A stretch of DNA of 64,000 nt from positions 620,001-684,000 of the forward strand of contig CATNEN010000027.1 of NCBI GenBank assembly GCA_950097015.1, given 5' to 3'. The position numbers and the translations under genes were made by a program. This DNA is from Macrostomum hystrix (Eukaryota; Animalia; Platyhelminthes). Each line of letters starts with the position of its first letter. The first letter of the stretch is position 1. The notes under the pieces are model-generated. The model did not search any database. It worked only from the letters and a program-made list of their open reading frames with translations, and was not told the origin of the DNA. This document shows, one piece after another, positions 3,850 through 51,427 of this stretch.

Positions 3850-6071
3850 TTACATTCCGAATCTGCGCAGAGCAGAGATGTACGACACGAGGAGGGCAAC
3901 ACTCAGGCCAACCAATGTGCTGCTGCACTCTAGCCTGACTGCAGGCTTAGAGGTACCCGCGGTTGTTATCGTGATAGTCACCGTGACGTTCTTGTCGCCC
4001 AGTGTTGTCACAATGATGCTGAAAGTCAAGTCAGCGGCCTTGACACACTGGGCATATTGCATTTATGTGTTCTGGTGTTTTGTCTATGGTAATTTTCTTC
4101 TACGAGAATATGAGTACGTTCGATAATACTGTCAGTATAAAAAAGAAAAAACTTACGCATTCAAGTTGATAGAAGTCACCATGGTGTTGACGGTATCGGC
4201 CGGCAGGGTGATGGTTGGGATGACAGAGCGTCTTGAACGTTGCAGAAATTCATATTCGTCGTCGATGCCATCGTAGAACAAGGCGTTCGCCAGGGCCAAA
4301 TCACGCTTGCGTCTTCCAGAAGGCGGGCTGGACGGTGGTGGGCTACCATACGGAGGCGGGCTACCAGATGGAGGCGGGCTACCAGGCGGAGGTGGGCTAC
4401 CAGACGGAGGTGGGCTACCAGACGGAGGTGGGCTGCCAGATGGTGGTGGGCTGCCAAACGGAGGCGGGCTACCAGACGGAGGTGGGCTGCCAGATGGTGG
4501 TGGGCTGCCAGGCGGAGGCGGGCTACCAGACGGAGGCGGGCTGCCTGACGGAGGAGGGCTGCCAGGCGGAGGAGGGCTACCAGACGGAGGTTGGCTGCCA
4601 GACGGAGGTGGGCTACCAGACGGAGGTGGGCTACCAGACGGAGGTGGGCTGCCAGATGGTGGTGGGCTGCCAGACGGAGGCGGGCTACCAGACGGAGGAG
4701 GGCTGCCAGGCGGAGGAGGGCTGCCAGGCGGAGGAGGGCTGCCAGGCGGAGGAGGGCTGCCAGACGGAGGCGGGCTGCCTGACGGAGGTGGGTTTCCAGA
4801 TGGTGGTGGGCTGCCAGACGGAGGCAGGCTACCAGACGGAGGAGGGCTGCCAGGCGGAGGAGGGCTGCCAGGCGGAGGAGGGCTGCCAGGCGGAGGAGGG
4901 CTGCCAGACAGAGGCGGGCTGCCAGACGGAGGTGGGTTTCCAGATGGTGGTGGGCTGCCAGACGGAGGCGGGCTACCAGACGGAGGAGGGCTGCCAGGCG
5001 GAGGAGGGCTGCCAGGCGGAGGAGGGCTGCCAGACGGAGGCGGGCTGCCTGACGGAGGCGAACTGCCAGACGGAGGCGTGCTGCCAGATGGTGTAGTCGG
5101 CAAGACAGTTGTCGAGGCTGGATACTCCACAGCGTCGCACAGCCGGCTGTTGCGCCTTGGCACCAGGCGAATGATTATAACAGTTGATCTATCCGATCCT
5201 CTCGAAGCTGGGATGTTGACTTCGCTGTCTGGAGCATCCATCGCAGTGATGTTGTCAGCCGTAGATGTTTGATTTGGCCTCAAAGTAAAATTGCACAATA
5301 ATTAGTTCATTCATCACATAATCTGCGTATCATCTTAGATTTTTTTTAATCTCAAGACTGCGATATGTTGCAGGCAACAATGGGACCTACCAACGAATGG
5401 CCCCAGGACAGCATTGCTTGTAGTTGTCGGCTGTGCGGCAGAATCTGTTGTAGGCATTCATTACAGCTCTCCTAATATCGGAGTAGTACTGGTGAATCTG
5501 CGAAAATACCAGCATAATGTTTTTTTGAATCAATCTCCTAGGACATCGTTAGACAGATGGGTTAAGTCTTAATTTCACAAGGCCGTACAAAATGTGCTCA
5601 CCAGTGAAGGAGACGCTCCAGAGATGGTGATCGTCAGGTCGCCACCAGCCTCTGTGTCTGAAACAATCACGAGGTTGATACTAAATTATATTTTTTATCA
5701 ATTAATATTTCACTTATCGAATTTAGATTTTTTCAAAAAGATTTGGTCGAGTGTGAAAAGCAAGTCTGATTTGAAGTTCTCACAGCTGCTGCAGAACTCG
5801 TTGAAGTAGCAGTAGCCGCTGTATGCCGTGTTGTTCGCATCTCTGCATGTGGTCGCCATGTAGCCATTGCAGATGGTCAGGTTCCGACAGGGGTTCGAAT
5901 CGCAGCTTTGGCCTCTGGCGACTGCCACTAGAAAAATATGAAAATGCCACATGTTTTGTCAGATTGAGACCTTACCCAAATAGGGTTACACATTTGCGAA
6001 ACTCGTATCCACTTACCCAAGCAAGCAGTCAGCAGAATACCAGCTGGAGACACTGTCTTCCAAAGGTACAT
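3850..6071 (-). CDS. Secreted, probably GPI-anchored Pro/Ser-rich surface protein (~550 aa): signal peptide, Cys-rich EGF-like module, SEA-like region, (SGSPPP)n, two furin sites, hydrophobic tail
   Basis: Exons 6071-6017, 5927-5784, 5657-5602, 5497-5391, 5278-4157, 4018-3850 join in phase through GT-AG introns of 89-138 nt (1653 nt total). N-terminus MYLWKTVSPAGILLTACLVAVARG; SCDSNPCRNLTIC; RRKR and RSRR; C-terminus ...CSSTLVGLSVALLVSYISALRRFGM*. Confidence 0.75.
4322..5096 (-). repeat. Coding 18-bp tandem repeat (~43 copies) encoding (S/P)GSPPP
   Basis: ggaggyggkctrccagay-type units on the + strand, in frame within exon 5 of the surface-protein gene. Confidence 0.95.
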
Positions 6072-7459
6072 TGTCTGTGAGGCGAATCACTTTAAGCCAA
6101 GTCTGAATATGACTGCAAGCTTAACCAGGCGCCGATTGCCATCATTTTTATTCCCAAAAACCATTTAGATTTTGACGCCGGTTGCTAACAACAAGATCCT
6201 TGCCCGGCGTATTTTCCTCATCCGCTCCCCGATTGAGCAGGCGGGGCCTGTGCATTCTCTCTCTCTCCCTCAGTCCCTCTTTCTTTCTGCGGCGGAGGTT
6301 GATGCCATTGCTTGGATACCACAATCAGCCAGCCCGCCCGTACTGAAGCAACACCGCGAAAACAATAGGAAATCGCGCAGCTGTGACGGGTCTCTCCTGC
6401 TGCAGCCATCGAAGACTATGTAAATAGGCGGGCGGGGGTTCCGCGGAGAGGCTTAAAAAACAATCCATGGGGCTTGCTCTGTGCCTCAAAAAAGAGAAGT
6501 GCCTTCAATGGGCGCGACCTTGTAAAAAATGGCAGCGGAGGCAAAGGCGTATTGCCGCGGAAACTGACTCCGGGTGGGAGGCTGCGGAGACGGATGGGAC
6601 TGCAGCGTGCCAGACAATGAAGCAATTGTAAGACAGGCTGCACCGGCTTTCTCGCTACGCGCTGCATCCCTTACCTGTCAAGGAAGCTGCTGGGCCAGCA
6701 AACTCAGAGCTTAACCGGTGTCGACCTGTTTAATCCACTCGGCCTACAGTCACTGGCTGCCTGTATGTGCTCACTATGAGAGGGAGGAGAAGGGAGATAA
6801 TTGATTTTTGGCCTTATTCAATTTGTTGTCAATTTTTTATGAGCATGGTTGGCTCAGCCGTTGATTATAGAATGAGGTCTGAGAGAATGAGATGTAAGCT
6901 TAAGCGACACGTAACTTGCAACTGTGAAGATATTTCCTGCCACTGACATACGATTTGACTGTGACGACGATGTCACCATTGAAATCGTTTCTGTTCGTTT
7001 CTGTTCACAAAAATAATCAACATAGCAACGAATTTGAGTATGGCAACAAACATAGGAAAGACAGATTTATACATGATTTGCACTTGAAGCTTAAGACTTC
7101 GCTATTTTTCCCCCTGGGAAAAACCTAAAGGGTGGATTTCAAATACCAACTGCCTACTTCAACATTAGCTCCGAAACCAAATGACCAATTTTTATGAAAG
7201 TCCACCACATGGAGCTATTTTTCCTCCTTTACGATGAACTAATTTTCTATAATAGTTGAAGCTGAATTTACAGCTTATTCCTGCACTCTTCCTTCCAGTG
7301 ATGGACAAGGAGGAATTCTCAACTCACAGAAAGGGCTAAAATTGCTATTAAACTCTCAAAAGTACCGAATAAAATTCAGTTGTGACTCTGGTAATCAGGT
7401 AACATATATTAAACTTATCTTCAAACCCAGATCTTGTATTTTTAAGTCGAGTTAAAGTG

Positions 7460-7465
7460 TTTATT
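7460..7465 (-). terminator. Putative polyadenylation signal (AATAAA) of the peptide gene
   Basis: tttatt on the + strand, ~150 nt downstream of the stop at 7616. Confidence 0.5.
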
Positions 7466-7615
7466 TTGTTCTTTAATCATCGCGAATAAGAAAAGTTACA
7501 ACAATAAACTCGCAAGTTCTGCCTGTTAGAAATAAAAAGTTTATGTTTGAGTAGAACTGAGTATAGTGAGCAAGTCCGGTCCGTTTCCAGTTGCCAGCGG
7601 CTCAGCGGCATCTGC

Positions 7616-7870
7616 CTACTTGCCAGGGATCGGCAGCATGCGGTAGACCCTGTAGACCGACTTGGCGACGCGCCACACACGCTTCCACCGGATTCGCCAC
7701 TTCTTCTGCAGCTCCGCGGCCTTCTCCGCTGTCAATTCCGACTCGTCCAAGTCAGCCAGGGCCTCAAGGGCCTGCAGCGACTCCGCGTCTTCCTCCGACA
7801 TCTCCTGGCTGGGTCTGGCGGCTGCCAGGGCTGCGCAGAGCAGGAGTCCGAGAGCAAACTGCCACTTCAT
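7616..7870 (-). CDS. Prepro-peptide (84 aa): signal peptide, acidic pro-region, cationic Trp/Arg-rich amidated peptide; candidate antimicrobial peptide
   Basis: MKWQFALGLLLCAALAAA | RPSQEMSEEDAESLQALEALADLDESELTAEKAAELQ-KK | WRIRWKRVWRVAKSVYRVYRMLPIP-GK*. GC-rich single exon with an upstream TATA box and downstream AATAAA. Confidence 0.85.
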   Translation of the reverse strand: MKWQFALGLLLCAALAAARPSQEMSEEDAESLQALEALADLDESELTAEKAAELQKKWRIRWKRVWRVAKSVYRVYRMLPIPGK

Positions 7871-7962
7871 GCTTGTGTCGCTGTTTGTCGCTTGATGAAG
7901 CAGGTTGAGAAGCTGAGAGCTGCACTTGGCTTGGAGGTCCACCCAGCATCGAGATGACTCGA

Positions 7963-7969
7963 ATTTATA
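7963..7969 (-). promoter_or_regulatory. TATA box (TATAAAT) of the peptide gene
   Basis: atttata on the + strand, ~93 nt upstream of ATG 7870. Confidence 0.55.
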
Positions 7970-8735
7970 CACTCCAAATCGACACGTTTTTCCGGGCATG
8001 GAAATTCATCGAGCCTTTGGTCTCACATGCTGCACAGCAGAGCGACCCGCTGCTGCTTTCCTTTTCCTATTCAAGCCGTTCTCTTGACACTGAGGTAGAG
8101 TAGCTCCTACAATTAGGTTCATTGTGCGAGATGAGTGTCAAGATTAAAGGAATTTGTGTCTCACTTACTTAGTGAAAATGAATAGTGTGATGACCTGCTA
8201 TCTGCTGCTTGACCTTGAGCAAAGCTTGCAAGAAGATACAGATTCCATTCTATTGTGTAATAGTGAGGCATTATGTAAGCCATGAGCTTTGAACTACAAC
8301 TTAGCAAAGTCAACTGACCCTTTTCCAAATTAGAGTTTTATATTTAATCCGATTGCTTATCTATTTGACGTTTAAAAGGGCTTCTATTCATTCATCCATG
8401 AGCGAAGCGATCTCATTGAATGGGCCCGAGGACTATTTTAACCATAGACTATGATTAAAAAGTCTTTCAATCAACAATTCATCCTAGACTGTAATAAATT
8501 AAACGAATTAAACAGGAAAGTCAGTACTTTATTAACTGGTGCTGTGCTGCTAAAAATGAAATGGAGTTTCCGTAACCAAGGCAGCATATTAGCTACATAA
8601 TAGCTAGATAGGGCAGACAGTCGATACCAAATACCGTGCAGTTGTAGTCACCACAGTCCCATAATTGTTACAGAAAAAAGCAATGGCCATTGTTGTCTCA
8701 TTTAACATAAAAAACTGACTAAGGTTATGCGTATT

Positions 8736-8943
8736 GACTGAAGCCTACCTGTTAGACTTGAAGCCTACCTGTTAGACTTGAAGCCTACCTGTTAGACTTG
8801 AAGCCTACCTGTTAGACTTGAAGCCTACCTGTTAGACTTGAAGCCTACCTGTTAGACCTGAAGCCTACCTGTTAGACTTGAAGCCTACCTGTTAGACCTG
8901 AAGCCTACATGTTAGACTTGAAGCCTACCTGTTAGACTTGAAG
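8736..8943. repeat. 20-bp minisatellite (aagcctacctgttagacttg, ~10 copies) interrupted by the LTR element
   Basis: Period 20. Related sequence resumes at 13476-13530, after the 3' LTR. Confidence 0.95.
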
Positions 8944-9175
8944 AGCCTGTAGCAGCAAATTCACTTCTTTCTTTTAACTCTTAATATTTAAAGATTCAAA
9001 TGGTACTTTTATTTCCCCCCTTACCGCTAATTTGTCTATGACCCTTGTTATCGATAGGTACAGTTGCCCGGTTAAGACTTAAATGTAACCCCACGACAAA
9101 ACTAAATAAACAAGCTCAAGCTTTTGCCGACTCTTAAATTTAACAGCAACATTTGTAGCAAGTCAGCTACAAAAT

Positions 9176-9187
9176 TGGTAGCAGAGC
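9176..9187 (+). other. Primer-binding site TGGTAGCAGAGC (complementary to the 3' end of animal initiator tRNA-Met)
   Basis: Lies 4 nt after the 5' LTR. Animal tRNAi-Met ends ...CTCTGCTACCA. Confidence 0.75.
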
Positions 9188-9195
9188 GTTTCATC

Positions 9196-10050
9196 ATGCC
9201 AAAAACCAGGAGATACGAACCAGGCACAGCAGAAGCCCAGCGTCTACAGCGGCAACCCGATGAAACGCCTCAAATTCCCGAGCGACAAATCACACAGCAC
9301 GCAGTCAAACCGCCCGCGTTCTATCGCAAGTCCCCAGAAATATGGTTCCGTCAGTTAGAATCCCAGTTCACTTTAGCCGGCATCGTCAATCCGACAACCA
9401 AGTTCCACCACACACTGGCCGCTCTACCCGAAGACGTGGCTTGCTCAATCGATCTGGATACGGGAGACTATGCGTCACTTAAGTCGGCGGTGCTCGAATC
9501 ATTACGCGTAAACCGGCACCAGCGCATCGAAGAGGCACAGGCTGCAGTTGAACTCGGCGACCGCCGTCCATCGCAACTGGTTAACGACATCAAGCGCAAG
9601 TTCGGCGAAGTCGGTCTGCAAGTCGATGATAGCATCGTCAAGTCTCGGCTCCTGTCGGCACTCCCGACCCACATCCGTTCCGCATTAGTCGGACACGAAG
9701 ACGCGCCGCTGGATGCTTTCTCTAAAATCGCCGACAGCATGCTTGCCGTGTCAGCCAGCACAACGCCGTTCGCCCCAATCAACCGGGCCATCGCACCCGG
9801 CCAGTTGTCCGCAGGAAACAAGAAAAGTCCGTTTCGAGGAGCTAGACGCGATGATTTTCAAGCCAACCGAAATTCTCTCCGCCGCCCTAAAATCTGCAAC
9901 GGTCACCTGTACTACGCCGCGGAAGCTCGCACCTGCCGACCGTGGTGTCAGTGGCCTGGACCGAAGCCGACGATAACACTCGCCAGCCGCCAACCTACTC
10001 CGACTCAATCCCGCTCAAGCAGCCCAACGCCGACAGCGGCGTCAAACTAG
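9196..10050 (+). CDS. gag: Gag with CHCC nucleocapsid motif
   Basis: First ATG at 9196. Contains [40 protein letters not shown] fits C-x2-H-x9-C-x3-C. Confidence 0.9.
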
Positions 10051-13000
10051 TGGGTCACGTGCCTCGGCCGAGCCGCGACCCCTCCCAGGCCAACACGTTA
10101 TTACTGTTGTGTCAAATTCTCCGTTCACCCGTTTCCTTTATAGTTGACACCGGTGCTGAGCGATCGCTGCTCCCACTAAAATTCGCTCCTCAAAATCTGT
10201 TGACAACCACACATGTGAAACTCTGTAGCATCGATGGTCGAGAAATCCCGACTTTCGGCCAATGCTGCGTCACTCTTACAATTCCTGGTCTCCGTAGACC
10301 CTACCCTGCATCATTTATCGTTACCGACACTGCGCCAATTCTCGGAGCCGACTTCTTCCTCAAGTTTGGGTTCCTCATCGATCTGAACACACGACGCATA
10401 CAAGACCCAGCGACATCTCTTTACGCCAACCTCAGTCCATCGAGTGTGCAACTTCCCAAAATCAACGCCACAACTCAACTGGAACCGACCACACCACTCA
10501 AAAATTTCCCGCGATTACTGGAGGCACCGGACTACACCGCGCCACCCGCCACATCTGTGCGACACCGCATCGAGACGACAGGTGAACCTGTATTCTGTCG
10601 ACCTCGCCCATTATCCCCAGCGAAGTACGAAATCGCAAAGTTGGAATTCGACAAGCTCCTCCGCTTCGGTATCGTTCGCCCCTCGGCCAGTCCCTGGGCC
10701 TCCCCGCTTCACATGGTGAAGAAGAGGGACGGCTCCTGGCGACCATGTGGAGATTATCGAGCACTGAACGCGGCAACCAAACCAGACCGTTACCCTATTC
10801 CGAACATCAATCATTTTCACCATCGTCTACATGGAGCGAAAGTGTTCAGCACCCTTGACCTGGTTAAGGCCTACCACTTCATCCCGATTGCAGACGAAGA
10901 TGTTGAGAAAACAGCGATTTGCACGCCATTTGGTTCTTTCGAATACATTCGCATGCCATTCGGCCTGAGAAACGCCGCCAGCACATTCCAGCGATACGTA
11001 GATTCCGTCTTTAGCGACCTCCCGTTCGTAACATCTTACATCGACGACATCTTGGTACACAGCCAGTCACGCGAAGAACATCAGGCGCACATCGAAGAGG
11101 TGCTGCGACGTCTAAGCGACAAAGGCTTGGGCGTCAACTCTGAAAAGTGCCATTTCTTTCGCGATTCAGTGGAGTTTCTTGGTTACTTCGTCACTGCTGA
11201 CGGCATCCGACCGCTTCCGAACCGAGTCGAAGCACTGCGGAAACTCGAGGCTCCCACTGACATGCAATCACTACGGCGCTACCTTGGCATGTTCGGTTTT
11301 TATCAGCGGTGCATTCCTAATTATGCTGAGATCGCCACCCCGCTACGACAACTCGTCACGGCGCCATTCAATTGGACGAAGCGACACGACGATGCTTGGA
11401 AAGAACTCCAGGACAGTCTGGCGAACGCAGTCACCCTGACTTTTCCTCAAGCCAATGCCACATTCACAATCACAACCGACGCCAGCGCCACTGCCATCGG
11501 CGCAGCATTGCATCAGGTGGTAGCCGAGCAATCTTCCCCATTGGCATTCTACTCTCGCAAGCTCTCTGACACGGAAGCAGCTTACAGCACTTTTGATCGG
11601 GAACTGCTGGCTATTTTTGCTGCGGTCAAGACATGGAAATACATGATCCAAGGCCAACAAACCACCGTGTTCTGCGACCACAAGCCCATCAGCGGAGCGT
11701 TTAGAAATAAGAAAGAACGGTTTTCCGATCGACAACAACGCCAGCTATCCGTCATCACGGAGTTTGTGAGCGACATCATCCACATTTCCGGCAAGGACAA
11801 CATCGTAGCCGACACGCTATCACGACCGGTTTACCCATCCCAGAACCCGCCACCAACCACAATTCGACTGCTGTCTGACCTTCCTCAATGTGTGGACCTG
11901 CCAGCCATCGCACGAGCACAGAAGGAAAACCCGGAGGATGAACCCCAGACAGGCCGTTTCAGCAACTTCGACATTGGAATCAAGGACTTCCCACTGCGAT
12001 GCGAAATCTCGCAGACAAACCCACGTCCCGTCATCCCTAGGACTCTCCGACGCGCTGTTTTTGACTCGCTGCATGCATTCGCACATCCTGGCCGCAAAGC
12101 CACGCAACGACTCATCGTCTATCGTTTTTTCTGGCTAGGTATGGCTAACGACATCCAAAGGTGGGTAGCCGAATGTCAACAGTGCCAGCAGTGCAAGACA
12201 GGTCGTCACGTCCAACGCCCGTTGCAACAGCTTCCAGCACCCTCTCAACGCTTCACGACGGTCCATATCGATTTAGTCGGACCACTGCCACCCCCAGAGT
12301 CGACCGACGTTAGTCCCAGACCTCGCTACTTGCTCACAATGGTCGATGCATATTCACGTTGGATTGAAGCTGCCCCTCTCATTGACATCACCGCCACTTC
12401 AGTCGCGTGCGCCTTCCTAGAATCCTGGATATCTCGGTTTGGCCCACCATTGACGCTGGTGACCGATCAAGGCGCGCAGTTCCGCGCGGAGCTCATGCGA
12501 AACCTGGCGACACTGCTCGGAATCCATCACATCCGCACTTCAGCCTACAATCCGAGGGCAAATGGCATCGTCGAGCGAACCCACCGAACATTAAAGTCCG
12601 GGCTGAAAGCACGTGGCAAGAACTGGCTGCAGCAGCTACCCATCGTGCTTCTCGGAATGCGCATTTTTGCAGACGAGACAGGTGCATCGCCATTCTCCAT
12701 CGTTACCGGTGAACAACCATTAGTCCCACCTGTAGTTGCCGACACCTCCTCTGTCAAGGAACTTTCCACAAGACTGCACCAACTTTTTTTTCCGTATCGC
12801 CAACCACGAACGCGCGAGGTAAGAATTCATCTGCCAGCAGACTTGGCTGCATGCACCCACGTCTGGTTGCGACTAGATCGAGTTCGACGTCCCCTAGAAG
12901 CACCCTACCAGGGACCCTATGCAGTGCTGGAGAGACACGAAACGACATTCACATTGGAAATCAACGGCAAGCCTTCTGTAGTGTCTATCGATCGAGTGAA

Positions 13001-13169
13001 ACCAGCTACACTGCCAGCACCGGTACCAATTAGCAAAGCACCAGCAACTACTGTAACACCGGAAAACCCACCGGCAGCAAACATACGTGCTAAAACCGCT
13101 TCCCACGTTCGTTTTTCCACAGAACCATCTGTTAAACTGTTTTACGCAACTGAACCATTATTAACCTAA
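9942..13169 (+). CDS. pol: Pol (PR-RT-RNaseH-IN), in the -1 frame relative to gag
   Basis: Protease DTGA; RT YIDDIL; RNaseH TDAS...ELLAI; integrase HHCC (HAFAH...CQQC), DDE core and GPY/F motif (APYQGPY). No internal stops. Confidence 0.97.
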
Positions 13170-46863: not shown

Positions 46864-49800
46864 GGGTGCCAGTCAATTCGGCGACAGGTTAATTCGGCGA
46901 CAACCAATTAGGCGACAAGTCAGTTCGGCGACAACCAATTCGGCGACAAATATAGATTAAAAACTGAAAAAGCCCTTTCGAAAACGGGGGTGTATATAAC
47001 ATGGGCTCGCATTGGGCACACTGGGACAACTGGGTTTGAAACATTATAACAAAAAATACATTTCTTTACCTTCATCAGCGTTTAATGCAAGAAGAGAAAA
47101 ATAGAAAAAAAAATTTATTTTCAGAAACGTTTATTTTAAATTGCTACGTCTTTACTTAATAACTCAAATGTTTTAACAACGATTTTCAACTTCCTTTCGA
47201 TAAAATATTTGCTTTCAACTGAAAGCTTTACTTTTTCTCGAAAAGCAACGAGAAAGCTGTAGTAATTACTCAACTTGTTTGCTGGTAAATTATAAAAATG
47301 ATTTACTTTGTAATGATTTTTGTTTCTAATAGTTTCTGTTAAAGAAGAAGGCATGGAAAAAAATCCGTGACAACAAGCTGCCAATTACGTATATTTACCA
47401 ACAAAAGTAAGGATAATACATACGCTGTGGAACACATATAGAGCTGACTAGAAAGTTAAAACTAATTTGCGGAGCCCAGCAAATAGGAAAATATTTGCCG
47501 ACTGTTTAGAAAAGAAAAAAACAAAAAAACAGAACCGTAGAACTACAAAAAAATGTAGCAAATCCGCACAATTTAAATAAAGTATGCTGAAATGCTAAGT
47601 GTGTAAAAAAACTTTAAGACAAAAATATTGAAAACGTACAAGTTACATTTCGAAACAAATGTTTTAATAAAAAAATTTAAATGCCTAGCGTACAAAAAAT
47701 GAATGAAAAATAAATGAAAACCATAATTTAATAGTTGTAAATTTTACATGCTATGGCGGCCTCATACCCGGTGGGAAAAAAGCTGACGGTCCGCCAGCGC
47801 TGCCGCCATCGGCATCGCCAGCGGCCCGGCAGTCGGGATGCGCCACGAAATGCTAGCGGCCCGCCGTGGCGGCCCGCCAGTGGCATGCCGCCGCTTTGCC
47901 GCCAGAAGTGCTGATATGCCAGCGGCATGCCGCCACTTTGCCGCCGCTTTACCGGCAGCGCTGGCGCTACTACTACTGCAGTACAGTACTACTACTTGAT
48001 TTACAGTGAGATGCCCGCTACTTTTCCAGCAGTACTGCTTATTTTCTAGAGGCATAGTTGCCACTTAAACCAGCAAAATACGCAGGAACGGCAACATTTA
48101 TCAGACGGCAGCATCGTCTATGAGCAAAATGATTTTAATTCATTTAAATGATTGTAATTTAATTCACCATTCAATTTCTATTTACTCAAGCAGTCCAGAG
48201 CTGTCAAATGATTTATTGAATGCCAACTAAAAAGATGCGTAAAGCACTCCATTCGGCTAATTTCCTGAAGGCCACTTGTAACAGAAAGATAGTAGGTACG
48301 GCAAAGTTTTATTTTTCAAAAATAATTAATTCGACTGACATAAAGAGGCGCCTTATAAAAGTATACGTGGGCTGATTGCTCATTGTTAGTTAATTGCTTG
48401 CAACTCAAAAGTCACAAAAGCAGCGCTCACTCCGGCTCATCGTTCCTGCTTTTCATCCGGCGCTGTCTGCCACCCATCCTGTCAGCCGCGTTCTTCAAAG
48501 CTGCCGCTATAGCTTGCTCAATCTCCCGCTCGTTGCTCTTTGGGAAAGATTGCAGTGCGGCCTGTTTTGTGACGTCCTCCAACTGGCCGATGAAGCGCAA
48601 TCGATTGTCAACTCCATGGCGGTTAAACTTGGTTTGCATGTCGTTGGTCAACAACACGCTGACGGCCGAACGCACGAAAGCCCGCACGGTGGTACCACCG
48701 ACTTGTCTGATTTGTCTGATCACTGAGGCCTTGAAAGTCATGTCGTTCAGACGGTTCAGCAAATCCTGAACTTCGTGAGTGCTAGCGCACGGAGAAATTT
48801 TCTCGGCTTCCGCGGGCGCATCGTTGCCATCCATCCTGTCGAGTCTGTCCTCGATTGCTACGACGCGTTTCAGGACGACAGACATCAAATAGTAGACAGA
48901 GCCAACCGTTCCAGGTTGCAAACCCTTTCGACGCACCAGAGAGTCCACGGGTCCGCATTCACCCTCGAAAAGCTGGCGGGGCTGACGTGACGAACTCCTT
49001 GAGCGCGCCTGGCTGTGTCCTTTTGACCTATCGGTACTGTGCACACTGCGCTGTTGACCGCCGCCAGACCTCACCGATGTGTCGTCAGGACTCCTCGAAC
49101 GTGCACTGCCGCGTCGTCTCCGCGATTGGCTCTGCTGCGGACTACGCCGCTGATCGCCGTCAGAGCTCACCGATGTGTCGTCAGGACTCCTCGAACGTGC
49201 ACTGCCGCGTCGTCTCCGCGATTGGCTCTGCTGCGGACTACGCCGCTGATCGCCGTCAGAGCTCACCGATGTGTCGTCAGGACTCCTCGAACGTGCACTG
49301 CCGCGTCGTCTCCGCGATTGGCTCTGCTGCGGAGTGCGCTGGTCTCCACCAGGGCTCGCCAATGGGCCCCGATTCTCCGAACGCGACTCGATCTGCTGCT
49401 GCTTTCGCGACGATCGATCTCTTCTTGGGCTCGTGCTTCTTGACCGAGACCACGGATGCAGCTGCGACAAAGGACGCCTCGGCGGTGGTAAAAGTCTTGG
49501 CGGCTGAGCAGTGATGGCAGGCGTTGAATGTTGAACCAATAGGCTGCTGCCCGAAGGACGCTCAGCTTCGGACTCCAAGCCAGAGGTTTCACCAACACAA
49601 CTGTAGTACAAGTTCTCTGGCGGAAAGCGAAGTCGACCTCCACTGCAAAAGCGAGGCACCTTCTTCAAAATCTGCTCAACAGACATATTTCGCCGCTTTA
49701 TGGTCTGGCAGTGCTTCAATGTAGAGAAAAGATCCGCTTCCTGAGTTGCCACTTGAATGAGGACACCCTTGCATTCGGCTTCCTCGAATTTCACGCGAAG

Positions 49801-50402
49801 AACTCGCTTGTTACCAGGGTCCGCGATAAGATTCTTGTAGATTTCTTCGGACCAATTTGTACAGCAGCTTATAGGGTGTACGGAGAAAGGGTCGTAAGCA
49901 GATCCTTTGTCGCTTGGGAAGTAAACCAAAGCAAACTTTATCTCTTCAAAGTTGAGCATTGCAGATTAAGCTAAAATGAAATTTTGGAAATATCATTTAG
50001 AATTTCCCACTTTATTAAATATATGCTGATCCAATGGATCGCAGTCACTCATGCTCAGGGTGATCACACTGCAATATACTTAGCAGTCGATCCGTTTGTA
50101 TGTATAGTCTAAGTGAAAACAGGAGCTCGGAAAGGAGCATTACTTTTTACCTAATTACAACGACACTCAGTCCGACGAGATTGGAGAATAATTATACCCA
50201 AATTATAGTAATACTCAAACAAAAACGAATAAATTTCCAGAGAATTAGTCACTGATACAAGTCATGTCAAGTTAAACTGTCAATCAAAATACTTTCTTGC
50301 AGAACCCTACTATTCGCAGTCGCCGAATTGACTGTCGCCGAATTGACTTGTCGCCGAATTGGTTGTAGCCGAGTTGGACTGTCGCCGAATTAACTGGAAG
50401 CC
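46864..50402. mobile_element. Non-autonomous Mutator-like (MULE-type) DNA transposon, 3539 bp, carrying a DUF4806/BEN-like ORF
   Basis: Perfect 9-bp TSD CTGCTATTT (46855-46863 and 50403-50411). Imperfect TIR gggtgccagtcaattcggcgacag vs ggcttccagttaattcggcgacag (3 mismatches in 24). Inverted arrays of AATTCGGCGAC/GTCGCCGAATT at both ends. Second copy at 1-1458. Confidence 0.88.
48427..49959 (-). CDS. 510-aa transposon-borne protein: N-terminal FALVYFP module, Arg/Ser-rich 32-aa repeats, C-terminal DUF4806/BEN-like domain
   Basis: Intact ORF. The C-terminus IRQVGGTTVRAFVRSAVSVLLTNDMQTKFNRHGVDNRLRF...EIEQAIAAALKNAADRMGGR matches the DUF4806 pattern as recalled. No DDE motif is evident. Confidence 0.7.
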   Translation of the reverse strand: MLNFEEIKFALVYFPSDKGSAYDPFSVHPISCCTNWSEEIYKNLIADPGNKRVLRVKFEEAECKGVLIQVATQEADLFSTLKHCQTIKRRNMSVEQILKKVPRFCSGGRLRFPPENLYYSCVGETSGLESEAERPSGSSLLVQHSTPAITAQPPRLLPPPRRPLSQLHPWSRSRSTSPRRDRSSRKQQQIESRSENRGPLASPGGDQRTPQQSQSRRRRGSARSRSPDDTSVSSDGDQRRSPQQSQSRRRRGSARSRSPDDTSVSSDGDQRRSPQQSQSRRRRGSARSRSPDDTSVRSGGGQQRSVHSTDRSKGHSQARSRSSSRQPRQLFEGECGPVDSLVRRKGLQPGTVGSVYYLMSVVLKRVVAIEDRLDRMDGNDAPAEAEKISPCASTHEVQDLLNRLNDMTFKASVIRQIRQVGGTTVRAFVRSAVSVLLTNDMQTKFNRHGVDNRLRFIGQLEDVTKQAALQSFPKSNEREIEQAIAAALKNAADRMGGRQRRMKSRNDEPE

Positions 50403-51427
50403 CTGCTATTTATATGTCTTTAAAGGAAACTTAGAAAAAAACGCGTCTACCATAAGGAAAATTAAAACATTCATCTGCTATGGCGTGCCTACAAATTTAT
50501 TAAGTGGTTACTCTCTCAAGCATGGCAAGGCATCATGTCACTGCACACAATTAAAAGTAGGTACAAATCTATCCAAATTAGCCAAACAACTTAAAAAATC
50601 GAATTATCTTCCATCTACACACTGGCATGTACACAGGGATAGTAGCAATTTCTTCCCAATTCGAGTTAAGGCCAAGTTTTCAACTTGTCTGCAACTCGAA
50701 TGCTCTCATGTACTGTGTGTGTGGGCTTTTTATTTTTTCTAAGAAACATTCGATAACTCAAATAGGTATTTTTAACAACAAAACAAAACGATATATATTT
50801 TTTCTTTTAGGTTTTGGAATTAATTTTACTGTGCACAAACTGTTGTATGGATGTTTGTTCGTATGCTTGTATGGAAGTATGAACATTCTTATTTACAGGC
50901 CTTTAGTTCGGTCTAGTAATTTGAGTTGATAGTCAATGAAGCCAAGTTACATTATTGACAAGTCTTATCGACTACTGCCGGTGACCACATTTTGTCGTTT
51001 TCAAGGACGAATCGGTTCGGATTTAAAACGTTTCTTAGGTCTAGCTATTCTCCGAATGGTCAGTCTTTTGAATCGTTTTTAGAAGTGGAACCATTATCTC
51101 GTTATGTGCTCGAAATTTTTCGATCCATTGTCAATATTGTCACTTCGCTACGAAACAAAAACCATACGCCTAACTACGATATTTTGTGAATGTTTTTTCA
51201 AGAACCATTATAATTAAGCATGATGTGTTTTGGATTAAGCCAGTAAAGAAGAAACAATTATTTTAGGGAGATGATGTAGATATTCAGATCATTTACTGCA
51301 ACAGTAGTGTGCCTAAGCCTAAGGAGATGAAGTATACATTTATAAAACTTACTTCGAAACTTTTAGAGCTTGGATTGACTAGCAAGTGAGCCCCAAACTG
51401 CACAACCATAAGTTAAGTTAAGTATTA

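Follow-up and report, generated by a model that had tools for sequence, protein, structure and literature searches.

Precursor layouts of known cationic peptides and the Macrostomum gene

Precursors of active peptides in frog skin (preprodermaseptin type, PF03032) carry a conserved signal and acidic pro-piece, a dibasic site and a variable mature peptide, often with Gly as the amide donor. In the frog genes, an intron lies between the signal and the rest of the precursor. Spider and ant venom cytolysins use a similar precursor layout, and medfly ceratotoxin and Drosophila andropin are reproductive antimicrobial peptides. The arminins of Hydra are built as a signal followed by an anionic region and a cationic C-terminal peptide with a Gly-Lys-type end. 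Their genes are clustered paralogs, confined to the genus and very highly expressed (PMC10945409), and one member, arminin 1a-C, is Trp/Arg-rich, has a GKK end and was used in amidated form (PMC6217004). Hydra periculin is a germline or reproductive antimicrobial peptide (PMC10945409). For free-living flatworms, the searchable literature holds almost no described gene-encoded cationic defence peptides. The principle of a conserved prepro joined to a variable cationic peptide is already well known, and what is new here is a genus-restricted family of this kind in Macrostomum.

The gene was read from a 64,000-nucleotide stretch of the Macrostomum hystrix genome, referred to below as the window, in which positions 7616-7870 of the minus strand encode a product of 84 amino acids on translation. 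Residues 1-18 (MKWQFALGLLLCAALAAA, 7817-7870) form a predicted signal peptide, with cleavage placed after A-A-A as the presumed position, and sequence comparison shows this part to be almost unchanged across about 50 paralogs and in M. lignano as well. The acidic pro-piece (residues 19-55) contains 12 Asp or Glu residues versus 2 basic residues and ends in a predicted processing site at K56-K57 (7700-7816 including the site). The predicted mature peptide is a cationic 25-mer (residues 58-82, 7625-7699) with eight Lys or Arg, three Trp and two Tyr residues, no acidic residue and no Cys. It is followed by Gly83-Lys84 and a stop codon (7616-7624), a motif resembling a carboxypeptidase and amidation signal. 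The initial annotation had described the open reading frame, signal, acidic pro-piece, 25-mer and Gly-Lys end in these terms, and each statement proved correct when re-translated.

In order to determine how widely this protein is shared, a profile of 26 family members was compared with 1.84 billion representative proteins at E values up to 0.001. It returned 13 matches, of which 12 were M. lignano proteins labelled "hypothetical" or "uncharacterized" and one was a Logan contig from run SRR31628392. Named relatives therefore occur in Macrostomum only, as the proposed lineage specificity had it. The claim that no named homolog exists also agrees with the Pfam scan, which at E values up to 10 found only two unrelated sub-threshold families and no match to PF03032, and with a search of PDB sequences, which gave nothing meaningful for the window protein. 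The M. lignano proteins BOX15_Mlig001477g4, Mlig030644g1 and Mlig025003g1 are true homologs with 65-80% identity, sharing the signal, acidic pro-piece, K-K site, cationic tail and Gly-type end. They are unnamed, yet they are annotated, as hypothetical proteins, which runs against the expectation that genes of this type had been missed by annotation. Searches of the literature with signal-peptide words and gene identifiers in main text found no description of the family, and it is missing from the supplements of Grudniewska 2018 and Weber 2018.

Three of the matched sequences have unusual forms. The M. lignano model P0011 (UniProt A0A1I8JEL3, 634 aa) is a "Sushi domain" protein ending in a family pro-piece and tail and appears to be a fusion, as does the 139-aa model P0001, which contains one and a half tandem precursors. 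The Logan contig of SRR31628392 encodes a protein (P0006, L044:541-813) with a Pro-Arg repeat tail, RLPRVRMPRVRLPRVRLPRLRV, that recalls proline/arginine-rich antimicrobial peptides.

The gene resembles the frog and arminin families in layout but is a member of neither, and the profile search shows no kinship with the arminins. Like the frog precursors, the many Macrostomum paralogs combine a conserved prepro cassette with a highly variable mature peptide, a likeness of working and not of kinship. The dibasic site is K-K in the Macrostomum family and K-R in the frog precursors, the phyla differ, and the Macrostomum coding region is a single exon, unlike the interrupted frog genes. Language-model neighbours of the protein came mostly from frog clusters (bombinin, brevinin, dermaseptin, ranatuerin and temporin, with scores of 0.75-0.80), which we treat as a lead only. 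The initial annotation had called the architecture arminin-like. The likeness holds for the layout and does not extend to the profile search, in which no Hydra protein was matched. The Macrostomum family has about 56 copies versus 9-12 arminins, endodermal epithelium is the source of the arminins while staining of the one Macrostomum relative is recorded in the gonads, and arminin activity is proven while the Macrostomum peptide is a candidate antimicrobial.

A family of compact genes and its probable transcription

A six-frame search of the M. hystrix assembly (220,453,370 bases in 42 contigs) with the 84-aa protein as query gave 60 matches, nearly all of them open, and 56 open reading frames were extracted from the fetched clusters. 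The paralog family foreseen in the initial annotation, with conserved prepro and hypervariable mature parts, was thus recovered as about 56 single-ORF copies. Tandem and inverted clusters lie on contig 1 (16.87-16.90 Mb), contig 2 (2.23-2.25 Mb), contig 26 (1.19-1.21 and 1.44 Mb), contig 28 (0.21 Mb) and contigs 3, 5, 10 and 39, and further single copies are dispersed. Four copies (C27:435k, C27:627k, which is the window copy, C27:830k and C38:12.19M) encode identical or almost identical 84-aa products. No second family copy was found within the window by tblastn, these copies being dispersed.

The paralogs have in common the signal M[KR]WQ[FL]xLGLLLCAALA, the acidic pro-piece, the K-K site and a cationic tail, and the window protein fits this description. 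In alignment A1, of which the window protein is the first sequence, M1, L9, C12 and K57 are invariant, and in the contig 2 cluster a single K stands in place of K-K. The tails are unalignable between subfamilies and include Trp/Arg/Ile repeats, Ile/Arg/Val helices ending in AGAVA, Arg/Tyr/Phe-rich forms and short 13-14-mers. Members whose tail boundary could be placed by script gave 35 distinct mature cores, and tail charge ranges from +4 to +13 across copies. A Gly-type end (G, GK, GR, GKK or GKR) is present in 42 of 52 intact paralogs (81%).

The duplicated unit that the window shares with its three sister copies was delimited by genome comparison as 7410-8342 on the minus strand. It is 98% identical to L003 and about 91-92% identical to L001 and L004. 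In more distant paralogs the shared stretch shrinks to 7573-7998, comprising the coding part with its leader, about 130 nt 5' of the ATG and about 45 nt of 3'UTR. Carriage of the ~0.9-kb unit by a transposon was considered and rejected, as no terminal inverted repeats or target duplications occur at its flanks. A few family members are broken or chimeric. Among these, one on contig 1 (L036:1772-2059, G000 C1:16.880 Mb) keeps the prepro intact to about residue 38 and then continues in an unrelated tail, one on contig 2 (L029:7763-8182, C2:2.236 Mb) has a frameshifted tail of 139 aa, and one on contig 39 (L022:1001-1195, C39:13.02 Mb) is a truncated copy with a TGA.

The window contains several other features. 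A Ty3/gypsy-type retroelement at 9124-13169 on the plus strand, about 1.2 kb upstream of the peptide gene and in opposite orientation to it, has a 308-aa open reading frame with a DUF7041 and an open pol of 1075 aa with reverse transcriptase, RNase H and integrase. Between it and the peptide gene, at 8739-8958, lies a minisatellite of about 11 copies of the 20-nt unit TGAAGCCTACCTGTTAGACT. The region 4153-5298 is very GC-rich (up to 72%) and has long open frames on both strands that gave no Pfam match. The same sequence occurs twice, at 1-1467 and at about 48945-50411, as seen from chance tblastn matches that repeat at an offset of 48,944 nt.

Conservation among the paralogs extends upstream of the coding region. 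A TATA box (TATAAAT, 7963-7969 on the minus strand) lies 93-99 nt before the ATG, and most copies, including subfamilies with only 45-55% protein identity, have a TATA-like box between -93 and -107 relative to the ATG. The initial annotation had assigned the gene its own TATA box, and the box is confirmed in place, with the claim drawing its support from the conserved position among copies. Upstream of it, an element of the form GGAAA(A/C)ACGTG is conserved across paralogs, represented in the window by GGAAAAACGTG with an E-box-like ACGTG core (7983-7993, minus strand). The module of ACGTG, 11-13 nt and a TATA-like box, about 100 nt 5' of the ATG, is present in 37 of the 56 paralogs (33 of 52 distinct upstream regions), including the window copy, versus a mean of 0.07 and a maximum of 1 in shuffled sequences. 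Transcription is predicted to start about 30 nt past the TATA box, near 7935, which would give a 5'UTR of 7871-7935 on the minus strand, and the leader (CTTCATCAAGC...) is conserved among paralogs. At the other end, the AATAAA noted initially is confirmed at 7465-7460 and an additional ATTAAA lies at 7477-7472, so that the two poly-A signals (7460-7477, minus strand) are consistent with a 3'UTR of about 150-170 nt. Each copy is thereby a compact unit with its own promoter, conserved signal, acidic pro-piece, K-K site, variable cationic tail and usual Gly(-Lys/Arg) end.

Contigs from three public runs (X1, X2 and X3), none of which is recorded as RNA, were placed on positions 7200-8300. The X1 contigs were 99-100% alike and covered 7464-7910 only, leaving the flanks bare, so that they end within the predicted leader on one side and at the poly-A signals on the other. 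This footprint is the span expected between the TATA box and the poly-A signals. Contig 20 of X3 joins 8105 to 8168, with the upstream exon visible to 8213, and skips a 62-nt intron (GTAAGT...TTGTAG, 8107-8168 on the minus strand) that belongs to an alternative, longer 5' leader upstream of the TATA box. Contig 16 of X2 is unspliced and runs from 7802 to beyond 8300 with the intron retained. The longer leader contains several upstream ATGs (8107-8320, minus strand) and may be minor read-through or the product of an alternative start. As for the single-exon structure that had been proposed, the coding part is unspliced, but a run contig of sister-copy type includes this longer leader with its GT-AG intron.

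The total contig size of the runs is 39-49 Mb, versus a genome of 220 Mb, and this, together with the spliced joint and the missing flanks, indicates RNA as their likely source. The loose ends of the contigs agree with other paralogs of M. hystrix to within 0-1 mismatch per 30 nt, UTRs included, suggesting that the runs come from M. hystrix or a near-identical species and include several subfamilies. Across the conserved signal and pro-piece, word depth was very high in X2 and X3 (10^4 to 10^5). Some variants point to particular copies: a GT insertion after 8077 and 8205T match C27:830k, 7667C and 7750G match C27:435k, and the variants of the intron-bearing contig fit the sister copy L003 (C27:830k) better than the window copy. 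Since the contigs carry sister-copy variants, they support transcription of the four-copy subclade and not of the window copy by itself. On the question of a transcript, whose absence the initial annotation had named as a refutation, there is a transcript-like footprint for the subclade from contigs that are not assignable to the window copy.

That expression of the window copy is not separable from that of its three sister copies is the one point in favor of reading the ORF as a random open stretch or a decayed copy without a product. The same or near-same 84-aa product and promoter are kept in all four copies, purifying selection acts on the signal and pro-piece, and the broken members of the family, unlike the window copy, show what decay looks like, which together make such a reading extremely improbable. 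The open frame is far beyond chance because about 56 paralogs keep it open, dN/dS is low in the signal and pro-piece, and the TATA box is positionally conserved. Very probably, the window ORF is functional and encodes a cationic peptide that is secreted and processed.

Charge balance, predicted fold and evolution of the precursor parts

The negative net charge of the pro-part rises with the positive net charge of the tail, with a Pearson correlation of 0.71 and a Spearman correlation of 0.73 over 56 distinct members from both species, in a test where the boundary between the parts was set by a charge criterion and the paralogs are not independent. On 26 cluster means, the Spearman correlation is 0.66. 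The pro-piece charge matches that of the tail, so the whole propeptide is close to neutral, with a mean net charge of -0.2. These values are consistent with a charge-neutralised propeptide, a principle known from defensins.

AlphaFold2, run with alignment A1, predicted one helix over residues 3-18, corresponding to the signal, and one long helix over residues 26-78, at a mean pLDDT of 67. Confidence was best over the tail (about 80-87), where the helix stops before LPIPGK. Folding of the pro-piece back on the tail was considered as a means of masking and found no support, since the model gives one continuous helix and no hairpin, and the case for charge masking accordingly lies with the charge correlation. 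The 25-mer has a hydrophobic moment (muH at 100 deg) of 0.36, compared with a mean of 0.22 for shuffled sequences (p 0.11), and residues 1-21 reach 0.44 (p 0.08). Across the family, only 3 of 35 tails gave p < 0.05 in either a helix or a strand test against composition-matched shuffles, and an amphipathic helix or strand was therefore rejected as a family rule. The initial annotation had read hydrophobic residues at i/i+3/i+4 as the mark of an amphipathic helix. The helix over the tail is predicted with moderate confidence by AlphaFold2, but the amphipathic pattern, at 0.36-0.44, is not significantly above shuffles (p about 0.08-0.11). Arminin 1a-C, which is similar in composition and has a hydrophobic moment (0.205) below that of the 25-mer, is nevertheless active (PMC6217004). 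High amphipathicity is thus not required for activity, but it is not usable as evidence here.

Candidate processing enzymes are encoded in the genome. Several M. hystrix genes contain copper-monooxygenase domains (PF01082, PHM/DBH-type) and several contain P-domains of convertases (PF01483). Enzymes of the dopamine beta-hydroxylase type also belong to PF01082, and an amidating enzyme is likely to be among these genes, judging from their domains. The tails contain many internal RR, KR and RK pairs that are possible additional convertase sites.

Rates of change differ strongly between the parts of the precursor. In a codon alignment of 49 distinct genes, values were pooled over pairwise comparisons within the subfamily of the window gene. 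The signal gave dN 0.044 and dS 0.228 (dN/dS 0.19), the pro-piece dN 0.126 and dS 0.324 (dN/dS 0.39), and the tail, which is the fastest-evolving part of the gene, dN 0.329 and dS 0.543 (dN/dS 0.61). These values indicate purifying selection on the signal and pro-piece, with dN rising 7-fold from signal to tail. Some recent pairs, such as two types on contig 3, are identical in the prepro and differ by about 19 changes in the tail. A dN/dS above 1 for the tail was looked for and is absent from the pooled data (0.61-0.92), so the conclusion is limited to a steep dN gradient and does not extend to positive selection. Part of this gradient could come from gene conversion of the 5' half.

Tails of the same subfamily can be conserved between species. 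The M. lignano protein P0001 (Mlig001477.g4), the best match of the window protein in that species, is 80% identical over the whole precursor to M. hystrix genes on contig 1 and has the 12-mer RRIRIRWRRVYR in common with them. P0014 and its M. hystrix counterpart both keep WF(V/I)RWRRRR despite differing signals. This conservation between M. hystrix and M. lignano indicates that the tail is under constraint.

Conserved tails would also be expected of neuropeptide or hormone precursors, which would release amidated signalling peptides, possibly after further internal dibasic cuts. The K56-K57 dibasic site and G83-K84 end are present as motifs of such prohormones, and the M. lignano proteins P0008, P0009, P0012 and P0015 would yield amides of only 7-10 residues. 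However, the tail is not the most conserved part of the precursor and instead has the highest dN (0.33 versus 0.04 for the signal), each precursor holds one tail and so one peptide, and about 56 copies with unalignable tails carry charges of +4 to +13. With the one stained relative, an M. lignano transcript, recorded in the gonads and not in the nervous system, a neuropeptide or hormone role for the family is quite improbable.

The gonad record and the proposed role of the peptides

Expression has been located for one relative of the window gene. The M. lignano transcript RNA815_1838.3 (501 nt, with a 364-nt probe) is entered in supplementary file 16 of Brand et al. 2020 as "gonads" by in situ hybridization, with Ramm et al. 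2019 as the source (PMC7336406), and the same file maps it by blastn to Mlig001477.g4 (PMC7336406), which is P0001. The forward primer listed for it translates to ATQLNQES, and P0001 has ATQLNQAS directly before its start Met. This match to the P0001 leader shows that the probe came from the Macrostomum peptide family. As the probe spans the conserved prepro, it would cross-hybridise among paralogs, and the record is one table entry for one M. lignano relative and the sole published staining. The entry nonetheless makes a reproductive context more likely, at the expense of general defence by epithelia.

One explanation, which the staining fits as well as it fits host defence, is that the peptides are reproductive and have no immune role. 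Secreted from the gonads, they could help to build the egg coat or shell, act between sperm and egg, or serve in sexual conflict once insemination has taken place. In addition to the "gonads" entry for the transcript mapped to P0001, RNA815_1838.3 was tested during work on socially sensitive expression (Ramm et al. 2019). Reproductive genes of Macrostomum also typically form large families that change quickly and are confined to the genus (PMC7336406, PMC10468722). Some tails, those of the C2 cluster, are Tyr/Arg-rich, which also speaks for this reading. A single table entry from a probe over the conserved prepro counts against giving the gonads too much weight, and a charge-neutralised propeptide with a cationic tail and an amidation-type end is the classic layout of host defence. 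Gonad expression is, moreover, compatible with defence, given that reproductive antimicrobial peptides exist, and a purely reproductive role, though the main rival to host defence, appears rather doubtful.

Hydra periculin, medfly ceratotoxin and Drosophila andropin resemble the Macrostomum peptides in being cationic and secreted and in their association with germline or reproductive tissue, and some of them respond to mating. They have no sequence similarity to the Macrostomum family and have other precursor layouts, which makes the comparison one of analogy only. Their existence nevertheless means that gonad staining and a role in defence can be reconciled. Both readings would apply at once if the Macrostomum peptides guarded eggs or gametes in the manner of Hydra periculins (PMC10945409).

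The precursor layout and cationic tails would likewise suit cytolytic peptides released from gland cells for feeding, digestion or defence against predators, and both the very high word depth in whole-animal runs and the quick divergence of tails between subfamilies agree with such a use. Against this, the sole staining of a relative is in gonads and not in glands or gut, the diet of Macrostomum consists largely of diatoms, and we know of no venom apparatus in the genus, so that a cytolysin of this type is unlikely.

To host defence, in the form of an antimicrobial or membrane-active peptide that is possibly reproductive, we assign about an even chance, on the basis of the layout, the charge logic, the dynamics of the family and analogy with known systems. 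Under this proposal, the signal peptide would direct the precursor into the secretory pathway, where the acidic pro-piece may mask the cationic tail during transport and storage. A convertase would cut after K56-K57, a carboxypeptidase would take off K84, and amidating enzymes would convert G83 to a C-terminal amide. The released 25-residue peptide, rich in Trp, Arg and Tyr and with a charge of about +9, may then bind and disturb anionic membranes. These proposed steps are the route by which frog and Hydra antimicrobial peptides arise and act. Expression is likely to be in the gonads, judging by the single M. lignano relative with a staining record, and the peptide may protect gametes, eggs or the reproductive tract.

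A more far-reaching reading is offered tentatively, as it seems possible but less probable than host defence in general. Here the family would be a "one cassette, many peptides" system of the gonads, in which a shared promoter and prepro would deliver dozens of amidated cationic peptides on or in gametes and eggs, either as a germline-provisioned defence or as an arsenal in sexual conflict. If this is true, the system would have originated independently in Platyhelminthes, where classical gene-encoded antimicrobial peptides have hardly been found.

The family also serves as a warning for annotation, as many copies of such short single-ORF genes are labelled "hypothetical" or fused into wrong models. 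It supplies dozens of natural, Cys-free and easily synthesised peptides in a genus where RNAi and transgenesis exist for M. lignano, and its compact common promoter is directly testable. It offers a clean case of convergence on the design of a conserved prepro and a variable tail. If gonad expression holds, the family would link the rapid evolution of reproductive genes in Macrostomum with innate defence.
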